Below, piece after piece: positions 19,139-55,135 of a stretch of DNA of 64,000 bases; position 1 is the first letter of the stretch, and the number at the start of each line of letters is the position of its first letter. The DNA is taken from the NCBI RefSeq assembly GCF_902652985.1, contig NC_047022.1, positions 13,702,001 through 13,766,000 on the forward strand. Direction: 5' to 3'. The notes under the pieces are model-generated. The model did no database searches. It had not been told where the DNA came from and was given only the letters and a program-made list of their open reading frames with translations. Made by a program: the position numbers and the translations under genes. The stretch comes from Pecten maximus (Eukaryota).

Positions 19139-21147
19139 TACCATTGATGAGAAAGTGACTAGCGCTTGATGCCAATTTTATTTCTATTTCCATTGAAATG
19201 AATTAAAATGACGACAGAGATCACGTGGTCCAAGTATCATTATTTCCAATGACACATATAACGTTTAACGTTTAGACTAAAGTGTTTCCTGATTCCATTT
19301 TGATACTGCTATTACAATAACAACATTTTGCTTACTTTCATTTTTCTCCCATCAATAGCCCATTGGTGCTTGATCAGGAACATTATATACCTTGCTTAAT
19401 AAGACTTGAAAAATAAACACAAATACCTTACAGTGTTTACTTAATTCTGAGAGTAACTCTGTCAGACACATGCACAGATCATGGGAAAATCAGACGACAG
19501 CGTACTTCGGTTTCATGATAAGCGACCTAAGACCAATCTGACAATCGTTATCTATTCTTGTCTATCACGCACTTAGTAAAATTACAAAATACCTGTTATC
19601 TGATGTGCCTTTATTTATTTTCAAAACGACTTTTAAACATGAAGGAAACTGTAACAAGGAAAAAACCATTCAACATAGATGAATCTTATTCTGTATAACG
19701 TTGTAATAAAGAAGATAAAACAGCATGTGGATAGCATATACATTCACAGAACTCATTTAGTATATTTACATCTGTTGGACATGTAACAAAGCTACATTAC
19801 TCGTGAAAAAAACCGCATGAAATTAATCATTTGTATTGCAATTACCAAAAATGAGCATATATATATATTTTTTATGAATTGAAAGATTCTTGGAATTTGC
19901 AATGGCATACGTGACTAGAAAAATCCTGAAGGGCAAAATATCCTCAAGAGCACGTCAAAATATTTTGATAGGGAATATTTATTGGAAATTTTAATAATCA
20001 AACCAATCAGGCTTTATTAGTGAATGAAAAAAATAATTTACAAGGTGTTTTGTACATATGCCATTATATGTAAAACTATTGGGGGAACAAAAGATGAATA
20101 GAGTTAAGAAAACAGAACCAAGAAGTGATGATAGTAACGTAATAACAAAATATCTTTCATCACCGGTTAGAGTAATTTATTATGAATATTTACATTATAG
20201 AACAGACAGACGAGTTTGTATTCTCAAAATTGAGGGCGTGATGACTAATCAAACATATAAAATGAATTATCTACCTTTTTTATTTTGAATTGTCAACATG
20301 ATTAACAAACACAACATTTTATTGGTCTGTTATAATACGGAAACTTTCGTTAACAATAACACGGAAGGTATTAACTATGGACTATTAACTAAGAAGAATA
20401 AACAGTAAAACCAACAATGAAAACAGAAATCATGACTAATCTAGATTATATTACAGAGACGGAAACTATTTATGTTTTGCCTTTTATTCAAAAGCTGAAC
20501 ACTGGCATGCCACTCAAATATAGATTTAGACTAAGCTCTCACAAAATAGGGAGTATTTTACCACTTTTAAAATATTGACAAACTACTAAATAAGACTATG
20601 CATTACGTCCAGACCGGGCACCTATGAAACAAGAAATTTTCGACAAACGGTTATAGAAAGCAGAATGTTTGATTGAACGTTTGAAAAAAAAATCCAAAAA
20701 ACAACGAATATGTAATTTCGATAAATCATAAAAGACTAGACTAAACTAATCAGAATTGTTTATTTGTAAAGCGATCCATGTGTCAGCTGTAGTATTGCAA
20801 CACCTAGTGCGCGAAGATGGGACCGATAAGGATGTTTGAGATATCAATTCATATTGGAATAATTTTCATTTGGAAAAAAAATGTACGAGAAAAAAAACTG
20901 ATGTATTTTGGATATATTTTTTTCAATTGACAAGGAAAATAAGTTTTCAAGTAAGAGTGTTTAAAGCCTTTTTCCCTCGACAATAAATAACGACTTCAAC
21001 AATGAAGTGTTGGTTGTACAATTCTGTTGATTACACACTGAAGCGTAACGAATTTCTGTAACTTATTACGTGTTTAAAATAATAATGAAATTCAACCAAC
21101 CTATAAAAAGCCAATATTCCTCGACGTCTCAATCATTTCTTCCCCAA

Positions 21148-24100
21148 TCACCAACAATCTATTTGCTCTTGTATGCTTTTTGGTATTCTGACATTGCTAA
21201 ATTCGGCACTCCAGAAGTTTTCGGGGAGATCTGAAGATGGCACGATTTCGTTGTCTGAAATTATTCTCACTGTACAGTTCCGAAGTAGGGTTTCCAAATC
21301 AAAAGTATGTGTTTTTGGAACACAAACGCTGCTCTTCATCACTTCGTCATCGGGACCCCTACAAATAAACGGCATGTGAATAAGATCAAGTTGATGTGAA
21401 ATACATTTAAGATAAAACAAATTATAAGAGCACTTCTTCGAAACCTTGTCCTCGGGTTAATACGAAAAGATATTATTAATCGAAACATCATGTAGACAAG
21501 TATGAAATTTTAAATACAAGCCTAATCTTTATATCAGTTAAGCATTATAAAATGAATTAAAATCATAAATGCAAGAACGACTACCGATCCTTGGAATTTG
21601 TTTATTGTCTGTGCATATTGCCTGAACAATTTCCTGTGTATACACCGTGAGCTAAACTTAAATGTGATATAAAATTTGTGTTTCATTTTCATTTTTCTGG
21701 TGTGCGTGTACATATAACAGTATTACATATTCGTTAGCTTTCAAAAATGTAAAAATATATTAATAGTCACTTAAAGCTGACAGTGCAAGTAGAACGGAGG
21801 GTGGGTGGTATCTACGAAACGATTTCTGAAAACTGAAACTTATATATTTTTTTTAATCTCAGTTGGAATTTTTTTTAACGTTTTAACGTGCACTACCAGA
21901 TTTAAGAAAAGTAAACACTCAATGTATTACTCGCAGGTGCGGGTTTATCAATTAAAAAAAACTAAGAAGAAAAGTACGGTACACGTTTAGTGTCTTATAG
22001 ATTTTACCTTTTACTCACAGGTTCGTCAATAGTCTTGGTTAAATCTGTATATGGAATCAAAGAAAAAGAAATAAACACGAAACAATGGATTGTTCACATT
22101 ATTTTCGCGAATTTTCATTGTTATTCATTTTCTTGCATCCTCTATTAAAATTTTCAATGTCAAATTACAACATTTTGTGTATTTAACTTTGTGACAAAGA
22201 CATCATAACATATTACTTTATGTTTGAATGAAACAGAATATCGATATCGTGAAAAACTGTTGACATTAACACTGACAATACGACTCCATGATGAGAGACT
22301 ATATACCGATTTCAGGCAGGTAACATGGATCAACAAATGACAGCAGTGGCTTCCCTTGGTAGAAGACCTGAGGAACAATTACAGTCCATTACAACACAAC
22401 ACCGCTCTACAGTGTATATCAAAGGGAAACAACATAAGAGCAGATTTCATTGTTACCTCTCAAACTCTAACAAATATCAGAGGATGATTTCACCGAGTTC
22501 TTAAATAAAGTATGGCGTGTTTGCGATGTTTTGAACATCATGAGAATGCCAATCGTATACATAACATATTTGTCCAGACTTTCATTTTGCCTTCCGACTT
22601 TATTTTCCTCTTTTTGGATTCTTTCTATCGTCCGTCTATTCAGGTGACTAAAATGAGTCTAAGAAACATCTAAAAATCGCTTTACAATCACCGAAAAACG
22701 CAGAACCTAAATCATCAGGTGTTCTAGCAAATAAAACATGTGACTAGTGAAAAATGGTCACGTCTTGACCAATAGTAATTTTGCCAAAAACATTCTTAAG
22801 TTAATTCTAACAATCCAAACAGGAACAGGACGGTGAGGTATTCGCTTATCAAATTAGTCAAAGTAACAATCATACATGGAATGGCAGAGATAATTGAAAG
22901 CAATCAGTGTTAATATCTTCAATGTGGCAAAATTATATATCTATAGATAGGTAAAAGGTATGGTTAGATATACCAAATCGTATCCATGTATTTGTTAATA
23001 TTTACGTAGTACCAAACTACCTCTCTGTAAGCTCGCCTCTTCTTCACCAACACGCCGTCATTAACAGCCGACACCCACTGGACAGGGGTTTTAAACACCT
23101 CACCCCCTGGTCCTCTGATCAACCCAGACTCCATTAAGCTTCCGACATATCGGCCATGCTTAAAAACAATACGACGAAAGAGTGATTGATGAATATGACC
23201 AAATCAGAAAATCCTGTATGGTGATTCCATTAAATTACAGCCAGCAAAAATGCACACAGAGGGATAATACGAATTTGTGATATGCAGACTTAAAAACCGT
23301 GGAAAATAAGCTGATATCTCCGAAATGTTGTCTCCTTGACAAGAAATTTAACGGTTTACCATAGTTTCTTGGTTGTCAAATCGTTTACATTCACTAATAA
23401 ATTTAAGATTCGCTGGCTTGCTTAATTATTCAACGGTTCTGTAAACTGGCTACCCAACACAAAACATATATCAACTAAAGTAGTGCCAGTTAAACTAATG
23501 GTATATCAATTATTTCTCCGTTTTATTCGTGAAAATATTTAACAGGCCAATTAAAATACATTGTAAGTCAAGGATATATCTCAGAATTATCACGGATATA
23601 AATTGCTTACTGTGAATTTAAGTATTATTAGACAGTTATTGAAAACAAAAACTTCCGTTGGGTCAATCAAACTAATGTGAGAATTTATCAATGGAAATAT
23701 CAATTTCAATTTGCCTCTTGACAGATATGGATTTGTACTTCACCTGTGATTCTGTGACAAGGCAGCCCTTAGCAGGTATAAGAACACCGCGGTCTATTAG
23801 AGTTCCAAGAGATGGATATTTGGGATGCAACTGTGTGTTATAAGGCTCTTCAGGCTCCTTTTCAAATTAAAAATGGAAGATAGTAGGAAAATGATGGCTG
23901 TACATTAGACGAAAGTTTGCAATTATAGAATTGTCGCTTATCAAAGATTATAGTGTGTTCTTCTCAATACACTGACCTGAAACACTGCCGTAACCTGTGG
24001 CACTTCAACATGTTTGGTGTGTGGCTCTCTGAGATGCTTCGACACTGGGTCTGGAACTTCATATTCAGTCGTTTGATGCCTCTGACTTTCAGCCAAAAGT

Positions 24101-27100
24101 CGTCTTTGCTGGATTCGTCTACTGATTTCCTTTGATTTGACAGGAAACACATCACTACATGATGCAGTACTCGGCGAAATATTATCAACAGCAGTTGAAT
24201 TCTGTAATGTTGGAGATTTGAACATACGATCATATGGCGGTATCTGTCTGTTAGATGGAGGTGGGGAGCTGGACATTATTGTTGAAGAATTTAACTGCGG
24301 TTTCACTACTACAGGTGGCATAAATCTAGGCTTGGACTTTGCAGTTGCCGGTTTGGTGCCTGGAGCTGGAGTACACATTCGAACGCTTGGAGTAATAACA
24401 GTTCTTGAAAATGAATCCTTAGCCTTCAAGCTTGGCGGTACGTTTTGTTTTCGAGCGACCAAATGTGACGCCGTCTTCGATGTTTTCTTGCCATCAAATT
24501 GCTGAATTAATGATAAGAATAAATCTTCATCACTTATCATTTGTCCGCGCTAATAAATTGAGAGTGCAATAAAATATATTCAACATTTGAAGCAAAATAT
24601 GTGTCCGTATTTTACAATATATGTGTAACACAATGTTAAATTATATCAGCTGAGTCAGGCTACACTTGAACAATTAAATGCATTTTTCGCCTATACAGTT
24701 TTAGTGAAAATTGGAAAAAAGTACTTTGATGACGTTTGTTTTATAAAATATTGTGTTTTTGTCTGTTGAACATGACCCAAGGAAAAAATGTGCGGAGGAG
24801 ATTCAGAAAGTATGTATGTGAACATTTTTATATTGTTTTATCAGCTACATAGTGAAATATTGTAACCAACCTGAGTGTTCAGTCCAGCTTTACTGAGGGA
24901 GGATATTTTGTAAACTTGTAGAGATGGTCCTGCTTCGCTAGAAACTTCAAGTCTGTTGATGTGGGCTCTCGAAGATCCTTCCTCAACACAACTGCTTGAC
25001 TGTACACAACCATTGGTCCTTTTATTGAAACACGTACTTGATTGTACCAGATGTGTAGGGCCAGCAGCACGTCCATCTACGCGGATACTTGGTTGCATTG
25101 AAGCACTCATCTCCTGTGTACCAGGTGGCATCGGAGCAGGCTGATCCACGACATGAGCATTTGGTTGCACTGGGGAAGGTCTTGCCTTGATACCGGTAAT
25201 TGGCGGTGCCTGGTCCAATTGCGTTACCAGACAAGTGTTTGACTCCTGAAGAGAATCAGGTGGATTGAAATTTGACTTTTCTTGTGACAGAGAACCTTCA
25301 GAAGAGTTCGTCAATACATTACTAGTATGTTCATGTCTCGGCCTCGATAACGTACTGTTTTTGTCTATCGAGCCATTCTTGTTGAAACTCTTTCTCGTTA
25401 GCGACATCACCTCGCTGTTTTGTGGTATATTTTCTCTTAAAGAAACATCGTTTGTATAACCTAACAGTAAACTTTGTGAGCATGATTTTGTAGTAAGACG
25501 GGATGATTCAGATGACTGTGTGTCATGCATTCGTGTTTCCTTTCCCTCTGGATGGAGTAACGGTTATTTGGCTCGACCCGGTCATTTGACTTTCCAGATG
25601 TTGAGATTTCTCTGGCAAGCTTCCGGTTGTTATCGGATATTCAAGATCATTATTTGGATGTTCCATATCTTTTAACTTCGAGCTAAGCGTCTTTTGCCTT
25701 TGGACCAGTTGGATCAGTTGTCTCTGACGTTTCCCGAGTTGTTCAATTTCGCTTTTATATCGCAGTCTGTCTTGTTTTGTTTTAGATCTTGCCCGTACAT
25801 CAGCAGTCAGACGATGTCTCTCAGACTTTTGCTGGTCGCTAAGTTTTCGCAACAGCGACTGAAGTGTTTCCAGGTGTTGTTTTAATTTATCAACGTCTAG
25901 AAGAAGAATTCAAATTAAGCTGTATTTTAACGCTGCTCTATATATATAAATAGAAAATATTGATTTTATTGGTCTTATTACTCATCTTTAACATTGTTGA
26001 AATGCTTTGAATTAACACAGTTAGATTATCATTATTATCAGCTTTGAATAAGATCGTGATACGTACCCCGAAGGTATGATTTCCGCAGTTGCTTGTCGAC
26101 ATAATCTTGCTGTTTGACGATCTTTCTGAATATTGTCTCTTCTCGCTCGTGCTATCAATAAAATAGTAATTAAATCAGACGTATTGTTAGCATATCGCGA
26201 AGAAATAATTGACATTTTAAGTCATAGTGACAGCACTGAAGGACTTTATATGCGAAACTTGAATCATGGAGATAGCAAAATGAATGATGGCAGAAGAAAA
26301 GAACCAAGGAAAACCCCGGCGGGAGGACAAATGTAGAAATCTTTTTACATAAAAGATTAATTCTATATATACGTAAGTTATTAGTCCCCTATCGGTGAAA
26401 CCGGGGATACCATAGGTCCCCTCCGTCCGTCTTGTACGTACGCATGTACGTAACGCCAAAGATCATCAGAACTCTAGCGTCTTCATTCCTCAAAGTATTT
26501 TGATCAAACTTCACACAATGATAAAAGACCGTAATATCTCAGAACCGTTCTAAGTTCAGTTTTTTGGGTCAAGGTCACTGCTAATGTTTTAGTCGTGGCC
26601 GCAGGTAGGGAAATGTATTGCTTAAGATTGCTTATTGCTTATAGAAATAGCTGTTTATATCGATAATTCACTGATGACACAGATACCGTTATTTCCGTAA
26701 ATAACATAATTTCTCTTAACACTAAAATAGCCAAGTAGTTGTACCAATTATAATGGACCCTAGCAAACTGGTGATAAGTTGTTTACGAGCTAGGAAATCC
26801 ATTATCTGTGTAATTGATTCAATTTCACTTATTTCCTTATTGTAAAGTATCGATAGAGTTTTGTGACCCGCTTTGAGACATGTATGAACTTCAAATTATT
26901 GTTTTGTCTGCCTACCTCGGTCGCTATTGGACTGGTTTCGTGTGTTGATAAACTTGACTGACTTGCATTTTCCTTTTGGGATGTAAATGTCCGTTTCTTC
27001 TGTTCGCCATCTGAAAAAAAGCAGATATAGTATTTAAATCTCGTGTGAATTGTAAACAAGACACATCTGTTTTTATGTTATTGTATAGACGTGGCGAAAG

Positions 27101-30100
27101 TGACTAGAAGAGAACCATCAGCATAAAAAGTAACTGGAGTGTATATGTAGCATACGGTTTGTTCTCATGACAAGGGGTGTACAATGAATGTAATAACTAG
27201 GAAAATGGCGTATCTAAAGGTATGTTAATGTGTAACTGATCTCAACAACAATATGATAAGGAATTATCATCATGCACAATGTAATAACTTGCAGGCCAAA
27301 TATCGATGATCGTACAAGTATGTATACCGTTACATTATAACCGTTGTTTCTTATTGTCTCATCAAGATCTTTTGTATATCTTCATTGGTCATTTTATCAA
27401 CTTAAAGGAAATTAAAGGCATTCTATGATCATAGTCATGAAAATAAAGTTACCAAATTAAAATTAGTTACTAAATTATCTTCAATTAATATGTAAACCCA
27501 GTTACTATTCTATAGAACTAACGTTAAACAGGCGCAATAGTCATAATGCTGATAGAGCATTTTGTCCCTATCATTTAGCATATTTATAACTGCATTTGTA
27601 AGAATGGATTAAGGTACCAGACATTATTTATCACAATTCTAGTCCTTTCCGCGACACAGTTATACTCGGCATTTCCTTTCTTAAGGACTATGTACTGTTT
27701 CATTTGAGAATCGGCCGTTGTAGGTTTTGATTCCAGAAAATCTCGTTTTGAAGATGTTGTTGGTAAACATATTCTTATCCTTACAATACTAACAACATTA
27801 ATTAATAATTGGGTCAGGGCCTTAATTGCCATGCTATCAAATGACCAGAAATAGTTATTTTAACCAGGGCTGAGCCATTATATCAAATATAAATAAGTTT
27901 CACGTGTTTCATACTGTTTTCGTTCTTGTCATGCATTATTATTATAATACGTTACTGATAACAGACAAAAGGCGATCACTGTGATATAAGAGACCGTTAC
28001 CGAAGGTGAGACATTTTATGTTTGACCAAGAGTAGTGATAACAAGAATTCCCCGGAAGTGGATGTGTCGCCTTCACAGCAAGCTAGAATTTGAATTAAAA
28101 AAACAGCTTGGATATTCATTGCATCTATTCCAAGTATAATTTATATGATTATCATTTGCCGGATGGATTTCCCATACAATGAATGAACACGGCGATACAA
28201 AAATTGGAAATATATAGATCCATCAGTTTTAAGTAAAACTTTCCGATCAGTACAAATATTTGCAGAATTTGAAAAAAATCAAACTGATCTGCTTTGCAAA
28301 TCAAAAAGTTTCATGCAAAATTTAATTGTTTTTCATACAGAAACCAGAAAGCACTATATGAAGTTTTAGGTTGATTGACCCAAAGGGAACTGGACAGATT
28401 TTCTATTTATTAACATTGACCTTTGACCCTTGAACCTAAAAAGCAATCCCAAGCAAGCACTTTTGATAAGGAAGTACTATACAAAATTTGAGTTTAATTG
28501 GTCCAAGGGAACTCGAGTTATCAAATGGAAACAAAGTTTTTATTAATAGCAACAGTGACCTTGACCTTTGAACATCGAAACTTAAAGCAATCCAAAGCAA
28601 GCACTTCCTATAAAAAAGCAATGCATCAAGTTTGAGTTTGATTGGCCCAAGGGATCTCAAGTTATCGCAAGCAAACCTATTTTCTATTTGTGGTATGAAG
28701 GACCTTTGACCTTTGAGCCTGAAAAACAATCCTAAGCAAGCACTTTAAGTAAGGAAGCACAGAGTGAAGTTTGAGGTTGATTGGCCTAAGGGAACTCGAG
28801 TTATTACATAGAAACCAATTTTCTTTTAATACTAACAATGACCTTGACCTTTGACCTTTAAACCTTAAAAGCAATGCCAAGCAAGCACCTTTTGTAAGGA
28901 AGCACAGTATGAAGTTTGAGTATGATTGGGCAAAGGGAACTCCAGTTATTGCAGGGAAACCAATTTTTTTTCTATTAATAGTAACAGTGATCTTGACCTT
29001 TGACTTTTGAACCTGAAAAGCAATCCCAATCAAGCACTTTTGGTATGGAAGCACTGTATGAAGTTTGAGTTTGATTGGCCAAAGGGAATTCAAGTTATTA
29101 CACGGATCCCAATTTTCTATTAATAGTAACAGTGACCGTGACCTATGACCTTTGAACCTGAAAAGCAATCCCAGGCAAGCAATTTTAGTAAGGAAGCACA
29201 GTATGAAGTTTGAGTTTGATTGGCCAAAGGGAACTCAAGTTATTGCACGGAAACCATTGTGCGGACGACGCCGCCGACGCCGACATAGTAATATCTATAT
29301 GTCACCTTTTCAAGGCGACACAAAAAAAACACGTTTAATCATCGACTAGTATATATTGCGTAAAAATATCGAAACGTTATCTGGATCATGAAGTTGAACT
29401 TTACCTGCAACAGCCTCAGTGTTGATACGCTTGGATTTCCGAGGTGACTCCCCAGACAAATGCTCTTGATCTGCATCGAGTATCCTGCATTTTTCTTTGA
29501 CCCTCCTCGCTAAGCTACCGGTTTGTCCTTGGTGAAACACACTTACCTGATAACCGTCAATATTTCCAGAATTCCGAATACTTCTTGTGGATGTCCGTTC
29601 CCTCTGAACTGCGGAACTCTGATCACTACTAATTACACGTTTCTTTTTTTCCTGGACGACCCCGGAACTCCGAGTGCTACTTGCGGGTGTCCCTTTTACT
29701 TTGACTCCGGAACTTTGAGTACTACTTGCGGATGTCCCTTTTCCCTTGACTCCGGAACTCTGGGTACTACTTGGGGATGCCCCTTTTCCCTTGACTCCGG
29801 AACTCTGGGTACTAATTGGGGATGTCCCTTTTCCCTTGACTCCGAAACTCTGTGTACTAATTGAGGGTGTACTTATTGCATGGTCTCCCGAACTTGCGTT
29901 GGCTACGTTAACAGGTTCGCTATTATTCACTCTTAAGTTCCGAGTGACATCCGACTGGATAACATTGGTCGTTTGACCATCAATTTCTTCCGAGTTTTGA
30001 CCACTACAAAGGTGAAATTCTTTGGTCGGTTGAACATCGGTATCTTCGGAACTCTGACTTATACCTGGATGAAAATCCTTGTCTCCAGAAGTAATTCCAA

Positions 30101-32835
30101 GGTCCTCTGTTTGACTACCTGTTGTACCACTTAGGTGACTCTGAGTGTTCGCGTTAGGGGAGTTGTATTGAGTTAGGGATTTAGTGGAACCTGTGGAATG
30201 GTGATACTCTGCTTTTACATACTGCATGGGTAATATTTCACTCTGTGTACAGGAACTCTGGGTGTCATCGAAAAGTAGTTGGGACATTTGGCTCTCCGAT
30301 ATATTTCTCGAATCAATATGTTGTGCACAGTTCAATCCTGTATGTCCAAGTAATGACTCTGAAATAACAGAATCTCGGTCGGAGTTTTCAACATCTGAAA
30401 GGTCAGTGGCCTCCTTTACCTGTTAGATGATATGGGAGTATATACAAGTTGGTAAAACAAAAATAGACATGTGGCTACTACAACGAGGCAAGAAACTTGA
30501 ATTTGCCTAGCAATGTAAACGTGACGGAATCCGTCATCTGGTTAAACTAAATCTTACTGCTGCCCGTAGTTGAGCGTCGTAATCGCTAGTGTCCTGTACA
30601 TGTATGTATGCTCAGACAGATAAAATGATAATATCGTCAATGATGCTTCCTGTACGAACCATCTTACCTTGTAACGCCATATTGGAGATTGGACGGGCAA
30701 AACTGGCGATAACGTTTTATCTGCAACAGCAGGAAAGAAAACAACCGACATTACTCGGAATATTTCTTTAGTACGAAAGCCGGTTGGGACCATTTTCGTA
30801 GAATGGTCCCAACCGGCTTTCGTACTTTAGGTTGTCAAAATACTTGAAATAAATAAATCTAATATAAAGTACCAGGAAAAGTCTTGCACTTCAAAATCAT
30901 TAAATTATTCATACGTGTAATAAGATGGTTTGTGGTTTATAGAGTGAGGCACAGGGACTTGGCACAATTTCTCCACCCATGGTTCATATTATATATTGAC
31001 ATAGTGCAAAATACTATTATCCGAACACTTGCGTCAAATAGCAGTTCAGGCCCATCCTTAAACCAAAAATTGTAGGCTCGAGCACGACATACTATGAACA
31101 ATTCCTCATCGTAGATCAAACCGTCCAGAGAAAAAATCAAACCTACGTCATGACCAAGCCTTATTAGTACGACCATTTTTACAAGATTCAAGATTTTTAT
31201 TACTCTCTGACACGCTTGAGAGTGTGTAACAAGAGGTCAAACAAGTATACAACAATGTTACAATTATAATATGATAATGTGAGCAGAGCCTATGTTTGGA
31301 CATAATTGACAGGCCGTTTGTTTCTCTCAATTATCCCCGAGATTCAAGAATTGTGAAAACCTTCATATATAAATAGGAATGTTCCTTAATCCTACATAAG
31401 TAGAAAAGTACTATTTATGAATTAGACATGATAATGTTTCATGACCAAAATATGCATGAAAGTGGTATGTTTGTCAGAGCTTGATAGCTCACATTTAGCG
31501 CGGCCATACTTTTGGAATATTGAAAATAATGTGATTTGGTTCTGTGGTGCAGCTGAAAGCAACTCGCTAGCAACAGTGTGCCGAGCTAGGAATGTCAAGT
31601 GTTGTAACCTCCGGTGATGGATCGCTTGTATTGTTAGATAAAAGGAGCAATATATCTCTGGACATTAGAAGAATTGGTAGAGTCAAACTATTACAGTGTG
31701 TTGAAATACGGTCAGATTACCAAACTTTCATTTTCAGTGTCAATGAACACGTATTATATAATCGATTCTATGGCTATCTTACCTGTGACATCTACCTGCT
31801 GGATCCTGCTATTTTCCAGCCTAAAATAACAATACATTCGTGTAATTTTTCATTAAACACCATTTAGTAACAAGCAGTACTTAATCACCTATACAGATAG
31901 TGATTGTAGATTTGAGACTGTACCCTGAATCGTAATGATCGTAACGTATTTCATCACTACGTACTTTGAAAAAAGTCGGTTTGAAAATATGGCGGGAAAT
32001 ATTGTTAGATCAACGTTCTGTGACTTTCAACTAATAGTTTAAATTGCCACTACGTTTAGTGCGGGATGGTTAAGCCATATTGAAACATCCCTCTAACAAA
32101 ACTGGAAAATGTGAGCGAATCAAGTGTGACACCGACACAGAGCACATGCAAAATATTGTTTACGTGTACGGATCTGAAAAAAAACAAATCTCTATTCTTC
32201 CATTTAAAATAGTTCGCTAGGGAAGAGGCCAAGCGATCTCTTATTTATTTCTTTTTTTTTTCTTCCTTCTTAATTTGAACAAGCAGAATGAGTATTGCTA
32301 CAAAGCAATACAAGTCCCCTAATGACCACACAAGTTATGTGTTTATTAGCTACCTTTTTCTATATTGGATGTAATTATCTGTCATTTAAACCGTAAGGTT
32401 TAAGGTAATAAATGCATTGAATTGAATTGAATGGCCTATACGTTCAAACGGTTAGTACTCTGTCAATATGTCAGTATCTATCAGTACTTTGGCATATAAA
32501 TAGCACAGTATCATAATTCGATAAAACACAGTTCAGCCAATTATCTATTGACATGTCGGACGGAAAATAATATATGTGAACAATTAAGGAAAGTAGGACG
32601 ATAGTGTGAATATACGACTAATACTTACATCTGTAGGCCGAATAGAAAGCGATCGTCATTGTCTTCACTGTTCCGTGTTGTGTTGGTTACTATGGATTCC
32701 TCGTCATCGCATACTTCCGTCACCTTGGAGACGGTATCGTCAGACTCGTCACACACTTTCGTAGCCATAGAAACAGCGTCGTCACACACCTCCGAAACCA
32801 TGGATACGGCGTCGTCACGTACATCCATCATCTCT
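21148..32835 (-). CDS. ANKRD31-like: ANKRD31-like gene (coiled coil, RAMA-like domain, C-terminal REC114-binding-like motif). Approximate exons: 32835-32629, 31820-~31790, 30419-29405, 27010-26916, 26151-26067, 25896-24871 (frameshift ~25530-25560), 24549-23977, ~23850-23744, 23158-23021, 22367-22307, 22044-22019, 21358-21148
   Basis: Spliced translation gives QQKSERHRL...EQLGKRQRQLIQLVQRQKTLSSKLK; RAMA-like LGTLIDRGVLIP...GSLMESGLIRGPGGEVFKTPVQW...AYREVFYQGKPLLSFV; and terminal TVRIISDNEIVPSSDLPENFW. Most junction phases match; two or three are unresolved. No ankyrin exons seen. Confidence 0.65.
26379..26640 (+). mobile_element. Non-autonomous Helentron/HINE-like element remnant
   Basis: ttattagtcccct...accgggg inverted-repeat start, (cgtc/cgta) microsatellite, 'tcaaacttcacaca' and 'tcaaggtca' core, tattgct hairpin-like end. 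A related end fragment lies at ~32278-32320. Confidence 0.5.
28040..29329 (-). mobile_element. Non-autonomous Helentron (HINE/DINE-1-type) element with internal ~145-bp tandem array
   Basis: Subterminal inverted repeats tgtgtcgcctt (28063-28073) and aaggcgacaca (29312-29322); nearby IR tgtcacctt (29300-29308); GC-rich microsatellite 29262-29284; ~6.5 copies of a ~140-149-bp unit (28340-29250); A-run at the end. Confidence 0.8.
29590..29870 (-). repeat. Coding 42-bp tandem repeat (STQSSGVKGKGxSx, ~5-6 copies) in the ANKRD31-like exon
   Basis: Repeated 'cccttgactccggaactc' every 42 bp; 14-aa repeat in ORF 29346-30335. Confidence 0.85.
30770..30826. repeat. Perfect 25-bp inverted repeat (hairpin)
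   Basis: agtacgaaagccggttgggaccatt ... aatggtcccaaccggctttcgtact with a 7-nt spacer. Confidence 0.9.
31965..32000. promoter_or_regulatory. Candidate CHR (TTTGAA x2) + E2F-like (TGGCGGGAAA) element cluster
   Basis: gtactttgaaaaaagtcggtttgaaaatatggcgggaaat; motif match only. Confidence 0.3.
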
Positions 32836-48768: not shown

Positions 48769-51700
48769 TCATTCAAAAGCATTTTTATCAAGACTATTTC
48801 CACGGAGGTACCTCTTGATTCGACTTCTTCTAGATGACCAGTTAGGCACGAGGTCATCTGGTTTCTTGTTGTCATTGTCTGTATCCGCAGAAGCAGCGCC
48901 TTTACTCATTAACAGACGGACGGCGTTAGGGCGGCACCATTTGCAGGCGTAGTGTAAGGGACGCCAGCCCCGTTCATCAACACAGTTCACATCAATGTTA
49001 CAATCTAGAAGATAATTTGCACATTCATCGTTACCGTGCTGACTGGCGTAGTGAATGGGTTGTTTCCCTTTGTCGTCCACAGATGTAATGGATGCTCCCT
49101 TGGCAACCAACATCTTGACAACATCGATATTGCCCCGTCCACACGCATAATGAATGGGTTGCTTCCCCTGATGTCCTCGATGATTCACGTCAATGCCATG
49201 GTTTACAAGCGCCTGTAGACATTTCAGGTTCCCACTCTCACAAGCATAAAATACAGGCTGGTGTCCATGGTCATCCGTAATATTAGGGTTCGCTCCCTTA
49301 GACAACAGCAACGTCACGCAATCTAATCGTCGATCTCGAGCCCAGGCGCAAGCATAATGAAGGGCTGTTTTACCATAACTGTCCACAGCGTTCACATCGC
49401 TAACTACGTTCAAGAGAAGCTCGACACATTGAAAGGAGTTGCTTCCGTCAGATTCCGAACTATGCCCTTTACAGACGGAGTGTAGAGGTACACACATAGA
49501 CGCGTCTTCTCTATCGGGATCTGCACCATTACTTAAAAGAATCGCCACGTTCTTGGGTAAATTCGCCTTACATGCGAAATGTAGAGGAGTTGCCCCCATG
49601 CTATCCGGAGAGTTAGTGTATGCCCCCTTGGATACAAGGTGTCTTATGAGGTCTGGGTAATCTGCAGTTGACGCGTAATGTAGTACAGTCTTATCCATCC
49701 TGTCAGTTACGTTCAACCGAATTCCTTCCTGCAGCAGAAATTGAACACACTCAAGACTTCCAGCCTTGCCCGCATAGTGGATTGCTTGTTTGCCGGTATT
49801 GTCCTTCACCGACAATGACGCATTATTGGTACCGAATTCTTTTAGAATATCTAGATGACCGAATTCACTCGCGAAATGCACTGCCTGTTTACCGTTGTGA
49901 TCTTGGAGATTAACATCCGCCCCATGACGGAGCAATAGTTTAACTAAATCTAGGCTGCCTTTCTTACACGCGACATGGAGACATCGATCACACATGGACC
50001 CATACGCAAAGTTAACCATCGCGCCGTTGTCTAGTAACACTTGCACAACATTCAAGTGTATCCGATTGACAGACTCCATCATACAGATGTCTGGTATAGA
50101 CAGGCGAGATGCGTATTCCAGGTTGTTGTTATCTTTCAATATCTTCTGCTTTTCCATGAGAGCTTTTACGAGAGAGACAAGCCCATTTTGACAAGCCAAA
50201 AACAGAACGGTTTCTTCAAAATGGCTCGTTGACGAGGTCTTTGATTCTACACTAGTGAGCAAATCCATTGCAGCTTGTGGAGGTAGTTTCATTACCCGGT
50301 CAGCAAAAGCCAACTGCATACCCACGTCTCGGATACTCGGATTGATGAACATAGCCCGGATTATACCACGTGACGCGTCTTTAATCCACCTAGCGGCCAA
50401 CACGTGATACTTCGATTTCTTCAATATAATAACGTCGGCGAGACTGTTTGAATTTGCGTCAGGAATATGTTCTGTTCTTATCCTCTTCTCTATGAAGGTC
50501 GACGACGCCACCCGAATTATTTCATTGGGATAGCGTGTACCGAATAGCAGACAAATAGTATCAAAGATGGCGTCATGGATAAATCTAAATTCTTCCTCTA
50601 TTTCTTCAACGTAAACACCGATCATTTCGTCGAGACAATCAACCACTTTGCCACCCTCAGATGCCCGAATACCGTACACCTTCAGGATTGTCTGGAATTT
50701 TGTTTGCACCTGTTCATCACACGGTGAGAACTGATCAAAGACATCCCGCGGAAGCCTACCGTCAAACATCATGATAAGCACCAAGCCACAGAACGCGTGA
50801 ACATCGGTTGTGGCCAAAAGTTGTAACTGGCTGTGCAAGATAGAAAGCGTCTGGTCTAAGTACACGTCTAATTCCTGCATACGTTTGTCATTGGCAAACA
50901 TCTTACAAAGGAGAGGGAAGCCGGGTACATAAACGTTTGCATTTGTTAATCCTAACTGTGGCGGGAAAAGGCCATGTCCTTGGCAATGATTTGCAGCTAT
51001 CCTTTTTTTCTCTATCATACTGAGGCGATATTCATCCCCAGAGAGGTCGACAAGATTGTCCCGGTAAGAAGGACATTTATACAATAATGACTGACACTTC
51101 ATGTAAACATGCTTTCGTGATGTTAAGAGAAGTTTGCACTTGTCCAGTTTGATGAGGCTTTCAATTTTATCATGAAGTCGCGTCCATGTTTCCAAAAGTC
51201 TCATATTCATTGTTGGTGTTCCAAAAGCATCATCCACAAAATATACTATTTGCTTTTCGTCGTCATAGATACGTTCTATGAGGGCAGGGTCGGATAAAAC
51301 AAGAACGGCTAAACCTTCATTTTGGAGCTGGTTCAGTAGGTTAACAGCTATGGCAGACTTTCCATCACCCGGGTTACCAATTAGAGTTATCGTTCCTTTC
51401 GAGGAAAGGAGGTTGAACGCCTCTTTTGCAGCACGTGTATTGACAAATTGACTTTTATCTTTCATTTGGAACTCTAGAAATCTCTGGGTCTGATCTGTAA
51501 ACAAAAAATGGATTATTGACCGTTCTTGTACAGTATGACATTTTGATGAGCAACCCCAACACCATCCCTCATACACTGTCCTTACAATAGATTGCTCTTA
51601 CATGAAAATCTTCATATTTTCATCAAATTCAAAGAGCATTTTAAATGGTTATAAAAGCATTTTAAACTACATACAACACTGATTTTTTTCGCTCTCTTTT

Positions 51701-54893: not shown

Positions 54894-55135
54894 NNNNNNN
54901 NNNNNNNNNNNNNNNNNNNNNNNNNNNNNNNNNNNNNNNNNNNNNNNNNNNNNNNNNNNNNNNNNNNNNNNNNNNNNNNNNNNNNNNNNNNNNNNNNNNN
55001 NNNNNNNNNNNNNNNNNNNNNNNNNNNNNNNNNNNNNNNNNNNNNNNNNNNNNNNNNNNNNNNNNNNNNNNNNNNNNNNNNNNNNNNNNNNNNNNNNNNN
55101 NNNNNNNNNNNNNNNNNNNNNNNNNNNNNNNNNNN
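54894..55135. other. Assembly gap (242 N)
   Basis: Run of N. Confidence 1.

Follow-up and report, generated by a model that had tools for sequence, protein, structure and literature searches.

Does ANKRD31, the protein that in mice governs how many meiotic DNA breaks form, when and where, and whose loss results in sterility, have a counterpart outside the vertebrates? The question is raised by a locus on the minus strand of the scallop Pecten maximus (contig NC_047022.1, positions 13,702,001 to 13,766,000; this stretch of 64,000 nucleotides is referred to as the window, and positions are counted from its first letter), where a sequence-only reading had proposed an invertebrate ANKRD31-like gene at 21148–26151. 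ANKRD31 has mostly been discussed as a vertebrate factor; the literature up to 2023 still describes it as vertebrate-specific, and a literature search found no paper on an invertebrate ANKRD31 homologue. The discoverers of ANKRD31 reported that the surface of REC114 bound by ANKRD31 is conserved far beyond the vertebrates, and asked whether ANKRD31 is more widespread than apparent or whether another partner uses that surface. We propose that the scallop gene probably encodes a distant, ankyrin-less counterpart of vertebrate ANKRD31, corresponding to its C-terminal half. The domain order, the RAMA domain and a targeted match of the C-terminal tail speak for the ANKRD31-like identity first proposed, whereas ankyrin repeats and a link at database scale were not found.

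Mouse ANKRD31 (1,857 amino acids) contains two ankyrin triplets, the second of which is conserved in all vertebrate orthologues, a coiled coil at 1340–1374 (CR3), the conserved regions CR4 (1701–1787) and CR5 (1811–1857), the latter a tail of about 47 residues that binds REC114, and ends in W1857. The layout of the scallop protein, a coiled coil, a RAMA domain, a disordered linker of approximately 30–45 amino acids and a tail of approximately 50 amino acids ending in Trp, mirrors CR3-CR4-CR5. The domain order given by the sequence-only reading is the published one, and the two proteins also share long disordered Ser-rich regions between the domains. Unlike vertebrate ANKRD31, the scallop protein lacks ankyrin repeats, and it is shorter (about 1,200 versus about 1,860 amino acids).

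The scallop tail comprises 51 amino acids (21303–21151), ends in Trp and is single-copy in the scallop genome. The motif at 21276–21211, previously taken as the end of the protein, is present, but it spans 22 codons and not the 21 residues quoted, and a further 20 conserved residues follow before the protein ends in Trp. A phmmer search with the 69 amino acids of the last exon against 1.84 billion representative proteins gave 32 matches, of which 28 share the motif and four are chance matches to repeat proteins. Named members of this tail family were found in the bivalves Mizuhopecten, Argopecten, Pinctada, Dreissena, Mya and Ruditapes and in the nemertean Tubulanus, together with about 20 fragments. 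None of the named members is annotated as ANKRD31, and the motif lies at the very C-terminus in all seven of them as well as in most fragments. The Pecten maximus gene belongs to a lophotrochozoan protein family.

The tail consensus reads LxxLLxxCxVRLLxDxDxVPxxDLPxNFWxxDFSxVxLPxxxWxxVDxW, with the Pro, the Phe-Trp and the final Trp invariant in the alignments. This final Trp is kept in the scallop and in all 27 aligned tails, and is the last or next-to-last residue in most of them; six fragments have one extra residue (D, T or R) after it. In four other fragments (P0007, P0019, P0020 and P0021) the frame stays open past the conserved Trp, which reflects either a splice donor or unspliced sequence after it, or a Trp that is internal in those species.

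In mouse, the ANKRD31-REC114 complex is known from a crystal structure (PDB 6NXF). Mutations at Y1818/L1819, E1831 and W1842 disrupt REC114 binding, and W1857 occupies a REC114 pocket made up of R114, R117 and Q119. A stretch of the mouse sequence was obtained from the 119-nucleotide donor oligonucleotide of Ankrd31 exon 25 published by Xu et al., whose translation gives 39 residues. These correspond to positions 1810–1848, because all eleven residues named in the text on the crystal structure (P1816, H1817, Y1818, L1819, Q1820, S1828, Q1830, E1831, L1833, W1842 and Y1845) fall at their stated numbers. The mouse sequence of the published oligonucleotide differs at several positions from the vertebrate strings quoted in the sequence-only reading, and was used in their place.

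Comparison of the mouse peptide with the tail profile A2 gave 7.0 bits in a local HMMER alignment, a score reached by 9 of 20,000 shuffled peptides and by none of 1,703 natural windows of 39 amino acids. A Smith-Waterman alignment with a position-specific scoring matrix gave z=3.6 (reached by 47 of 5,000 shuffles), and a sparse test restricted to the 13 residues named in the paper gave P=0.008 against permuted residues. All three methods chose one and the same register, in which scallop ISDNEIVPSSDLPENFW faces mouse ISKQELLPCH-VMEQHW, so that the core of the scallop tail is aligned with mouse I1827–W1842 with one gap. Within the register L1819, S1828, E1831, P1834 and W1842 are paired with L, S, E, P and W, respectively; extending it upstream without a gap puts L1819 on a near-invariant Leu and Y1818 on the Leu preceding it. 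The residues required for REC114 binding in mouse (Y1818/L1819, E1831 and W1842) fall on the conserved Leu-Leu, on a conserved acidic residue and on an invariant Trp of the invertebrate family. We take these tests as moderate support only, because they were designed after the alignment had been seen, and regard the match as modest but non-random. Furthermore, the scallop protein and mouse ANKRD31 both end in Trp, and the scallop Trp would enter the pocket that holds W1857. We infer that the tail is homologous to CR5, that it would bind REC114 and that the protein would act in meiosis.

A peptide of related type is found at the C-terminus of TOPOVIBL, where the key Trp of a short helix, W562, packs on the beta-sheet of REC114 at the same surface; it has been described as equivalent to ANKRD31 W1842. 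TOPOVIBL differs from the scallop protein in having a GHKL-like and transducer architecture without RAMA, and its peptide is much shorter than the 51-residue tail.

Several observations weigh against a relationship to ANKRD31. No ankyrin repeats were detected with Pfam, at E<=1 or E<=0.1, in the public model of the gene or in five full-length bivalve orthologues, and these repeats are the feature that gave ANKRD31 its name and the most conserved one. Among the 1.84 billion representatives, the tail query matched neither a vertebrate nor an ankyrin protein at E<=0.001, and the scallop tail, the tails P0024 and P0006 and the profiles A1 and A2 retrieved no ANKRD31 chain (the 6NXF peptide) from PDB at E<=10. 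A search of the ESM Atlas with the tail gave nothing usable. Word-index protein searches with the Mya RAMA-plus-tail sequence, the P0020 tail and the alignment A4 returned only the queries or known members, by a method that, judged by eye, missed relatives of about 50% identity. Any homology lies below the level that ordinary database searches detect, and the targeted match to the mouse peptide is only 7 bits. In mouse, Val-Met and His stand in place of the Leu-Pro and the Phe of LPENFW, the most conserved residues of the invertebrate family; no residue of the scallop tail corresponds to Y1845, and the segment following the central Trp is five residues longer than in mouse. RAMA by itself also occurs in MPND and in many proteins of bacteria. 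All named family members are lophotrochozoan, with no deuterostome invertebrate to bridge the gap, and the tissue of the RNA runs used below is coded.

The main rival explanation is a RAMA protein that is unrelated to ANKRD31 and whose tail only resembles CR5. The gene would then encode a lophotrochozoan chromatin protein linked to ANKRD31 by the RAMA fold alone, its tail would serve, in this lineage only, as a docking motif for a different partner, and the likeness to CR5 would be due to chance or convergence. The lack of ankyrin repeats and of a database-scale link to vertebrate ANKRD31, the empty ESM Atlas search with the tail, the absence from mouse of the (near-)invariant LP.NF residues and the restriction of named members to bivalves and one nemertean all favour this explanation. 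Against it, the match to mouse 1810–1848 falls in a functionally meaningful register and scores above 99.95% of the shuffles and every one of the 1,703 natural windows; the two proteins share a terminal Trp, with the tail approximately 25–45 residues after RAMA; and vertebrates and the scallop alike possess MPND plus one other RAMA gene. We consider an unrelated RAMA protein less likely, but plausible.

Ankyrin repeats at 49.3–50.0 kb were also considered as a part of the gene and rejected, since they belong to a separate single-exon open reading frame with a P-loop, and the gene has its ATG at 32831. That reading frame (48769–51576, 935 amino acids) encodes a P-loop NTPase with about ten ankyrin repeats, is a separate NLR-like gene, and holds the only ankyrin motifs of the window.

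The sequence-only reading had split the RAMA domain over three small exons, which is borne out by Pfam and by the exon joints of RNA contigs (23857–23744, 23158–23021 and 22367–22307). The second of these exons matches Pfam RAMA (PF18755) on its own (E=0.0026), and the public spliced model of the gene matches profile positions 7–94 with E=1.8e-7 and 31.5 bits. Argopecten scores 33.6 bits and the other orthologues 35.8–50.7 bits; the scallop public model and Argopecten are thereby below the Pfam cut-off of 35.2 bits. The structure was modelled with AlphaFold2 (AF2) on the Ruditapes orthologue, a whole database protein of 198 amino acids consisting of RAMA plus tail, and the predicted local distance difference test score (pLDDT) was 94–98 for RAMA, below 50 for the linker and 70–78 for the tail. 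In a Foldseek search with the RAMA model, the only strong matches were the RAMA domain of mouse MPND (7YDT and 7YDW, which include the MPND-DNA complex), with E=8e-7, a template modelling (TM) score of 0.77–0.80, a root-mean-square deviation of 1.7–2.8 Å and 31–33% identity. RAMA membership is thus matched by both the Pfam model and the fold. In the ESM Atlas, a chordate cluster named ANKRD31 (n=111) has PF18755 in 99% of its members; CR4 is therefore a RAMA domain, and the scallop protein has such a CR4-type RAMA near its C-terminus.

The likeness to MPND raises the possibility that the gene is a diverged MPND duplicate, from which the MPN domain has disappeared and to which a new tail has been added. 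Mouse MPND is indeed the structure most similar to the RAMA model, at the identity given above, though it is the only eukaryotic RAMA structure among the matches. MPND has an N-terminal RAMA and no such tail, and Pfam finds RAMA only, no MPN domain, in the scallop gene. Moreover, the only strong RAMA match elsewhere in the genome, on contig C19, is a true MPND orthologue (C19:28489655-28493409), in which RAMA is N-terminal and spread over three exons (L011 9655–9915; L012 625–837 and 3200–3409), while it is near the C-terminus in the window gene. The middle RAMA exon of the C19 gene is far closer to mouse MPND (7YDT, E=5.9e-17), whereas the RAMA exon of the window gave no MPND match by phmmer. 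An origin by MPND duplication is accordingly very unlikely. Since the scallop has its own MPND and the window exon does not match MPND, the window gene is a second RAMA gene, a place that ANKRD31 takes in vertebrates; the pair of MPND and a second RAMA gene is also found in chordates. A transposase-like open reading frame of 687 amino acids is located just downstream of the MPND RAMA exons (L012 4544–6604).

The charged helical stretch proposed as a coiled coil lies where the sequence-only reading had put it, on the minus strand in exon A and the start of exon B (from 25896 onward). AF2 with orthologues predicts two long helices at residues 2–36 and 40–78 of exon B (pLDDT 90–96), followed by disorder. 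The helical region is approximately 80 amino acids long and conserved among bivalves.

The partner expected for the tail, REC114, is present in the scallop genome. Two exons were found on contig C18 (C18:454664-458993; L008 4664–4870 and 8808–8993), one matching REC114 profile positions 193–236 (E=4e-9) and the other positions 91–134 (E=0.0034). The latter contains the stretch RRFRMQ, with the spacing of mouse R114/R117/Q119. A scallop REC114 exon searched against PDB gave no match to mouse REC114, and the N-terminal exons of the PH domain were not located on C18, where a satellite and a run of N lie upstream. The satellite has a unit of about 114 bp with a repeated open reading frame motif (QSPGICLMLFRRDRAQVYV...). 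The window has a run of N of its own at 54894–55135.

The last exon of the window gene matches the C-terminus of RefSeq XP_033747335.1 from Pecten maximus without any difference. Contigs of four public runs, two recorded as RNA and two presumed to be RNA, were mapped onto 20700–26650, and spliced transcripts were found in all four, which stem from two or more studies (with coded samples, and contigs that carry no expression levels). The joints cover all seven junctions of the span originally flagged (21358/22008, 22044/22307, 22367/23021, 23158/23744, 23857/23977, 24501/24871 and 25896/26067), with support from up to four runs, and each has CT..AC on the plus strand, which is GT..AG on the minus strand. 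Six of the seven junctions are exactly those predicted from the sequence; in the remaining case the exon begins at 24501 and not at 24549, the acceptor used lying 48 bases closer to the 3' end of the transcript. Contigs of the runs X1 and X2 continue past exon A into a unique match at 26918–26947, which defines the next exon upstream, and the Mizuhopecten and Argopecten orthologues, used as tblastn queries, carry the model on to an ATG at 32831. The gene is a transcribed minus-strand gene of at least 12 exons, with the stop at 21150–21148 and a coding length of about 1,200 codons. AG/GT splice sites flank all twelve exons. The flagged span is its 3' half, and the gene starts far upstream of it. 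An additional small exon (length 2 mod 3), predicted between the first two coding exons by comparison with orthologues, was not found. In transcript order, the features on the minus strand are as follows.

32629..32831, minus strand: first coding exon, with ATG at 32831 and ending in phase 2 (tblastn with orthologues, splice sites).
30668..30720, minus strand: exon with a conserved DKTLSPVLPVQ motif (tblastn, splice sites).
29405..30419, minus strand: large Ser-rich disordered exon (tblastn, splice sites).
26916..27010, minus strand: small exon spliced straight to exon A (RNA contigs of runs X1/X2, splice sites).
26067..26151, minus strand: exon A, where the coiled-coil region begins (RNA joint 25896/26067; 79% identity to the Mizuhopecten orthologue).
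24871..25896, minus strand: exon B, the first ~80 codons (25896 to ~25660) being coiled-coil region and the remainder disordered.
23977..24501, minus strand: exon C, disordered (RNA joints 24501/24871 and 23857/23977).
23744..23857, minus strand: RAMA exon 1 (RNA joints; within the Pfam RAMA match of the public model).
23021..23158, minus strand: RAMA exon 2, the core (RNA joints; Pfam RAMA match on the exon alone).
22307..22367, minus strand: RAMA exon 3, with VFYQGKPLL and the end of the domain (RNA joints in four runs; RAMA match of the public model).
22008..22044, minus strand: linker exon of 12 codons (RNA joints 22044/22307 and 21358/22008).
21148..21358, minus strand: last coding exon, with the end of the linker and the 51-residue tail (21303–21151); stop at 21150–21148.
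20700..21147, continuing beyond 20700, minus strand: 3' untranslated region (contigs of four runs unbroken over 20700–21357).

The first coding exon encodes an acidic N-terminus, an 11-residue repeat and a SIVTNTTRNS motif common to the bivalve orthologues; a coding tandem repeat with a 33-bp unit in 2.2 copies is located there at 32746–32818. The large Ser-rich exon carries another at 29658–29870, with a 45-bp unit (15 amino acids, STQSSGVKGKGTSP-like) in 4.7 copies, and the intron that follows contains a 145-bp tandem repeat (28416–29256, 5.8 copies, 78% matches). Between the coiled coil and RAMA, no stretch is better conserved in the five full-length bivalve orthologues than the exon C motif ISPSTASCSDVFPVKSKEISRRIQQRRLLAESQ (~24186–24080), which may be a further docking site. 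Contigs from several RNA runs span intron sequence between the RAMA exons at 22842–23735; these runs therefore contain unspliced RNA or some genomic DNA besides the spliced form.

In the assembly, the reading frame of exon B changes near 25550, and the public model starts downstream of this break, which might suggest a decaying pseudogene. However, every RNA contig covering the site (in the three runs X1, X2 and X4) lacks one base relative to the assembly, at 25549 or 25552, which restores a single open frame. The extra base at 25549–25552 is either an error of the assembly or an allele carried by the reference animal. Furthermore, the exons are all spliced at canonical sites, and intact orthologues of 1,068–1,195 amino acids exist in five other bivalves. 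We therefore reject the pseudogene reading on the RNA evidence, and regard it as extremely improbable. The break also accounts for the public annotation, which is without the N-terminal half including the coiled coil: XP_033747335.1 is only 540 amino acids long and begins downstream of the extra base.

If the gene is a counterpart of ANKRD31, its product could work as follows. RAMA, with its likeness to the DNA-bound fold of MPND, would tether the protein to DNA or chromatin. Through its helical region the protein could pair with itself or with partners, and the disordered middle might carry further docking motifs. The last ~50 residues would fold onto the PH domain of REC114, where the conserved Leu-Leu would stand in for mouse Y1818/L1819, the acidic residue of SDNE for E1831, the Phe-Trp of ENFW for W1842 and the terminal Trp for W1857. 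In this way REC114-MEI4 would be recruited to the chromosomes to control meiotic double-strand breaks.

The scallop gene suggests, without proving it, that a regulator of meiotic DNA breaks is older than the vertebrates. We see about an even chance that the RAMA-plus-tail module coupling ANKRD31 to REC114 was already present in the protostome-deuterostome ancestor, with the ankyrin repeats either a later chordate addition or lost in lophotrochozoans. The C-terminal half would in that case be the ancient core of ANKRD31, and CR4, a region of “function unknown”, is assigned to a DNA-binding fold. An ankyrin-less invertebrate protein with a RAMA-plus-tail ending is also a concrete candidate for answering the question raised by the discoverers of ANKRD31. 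If the proposal is true, ANKRD31 would not be vertebrate-specific, and the REC114-based control of meiotic breaks could be studied in molluscs and nemerteans.

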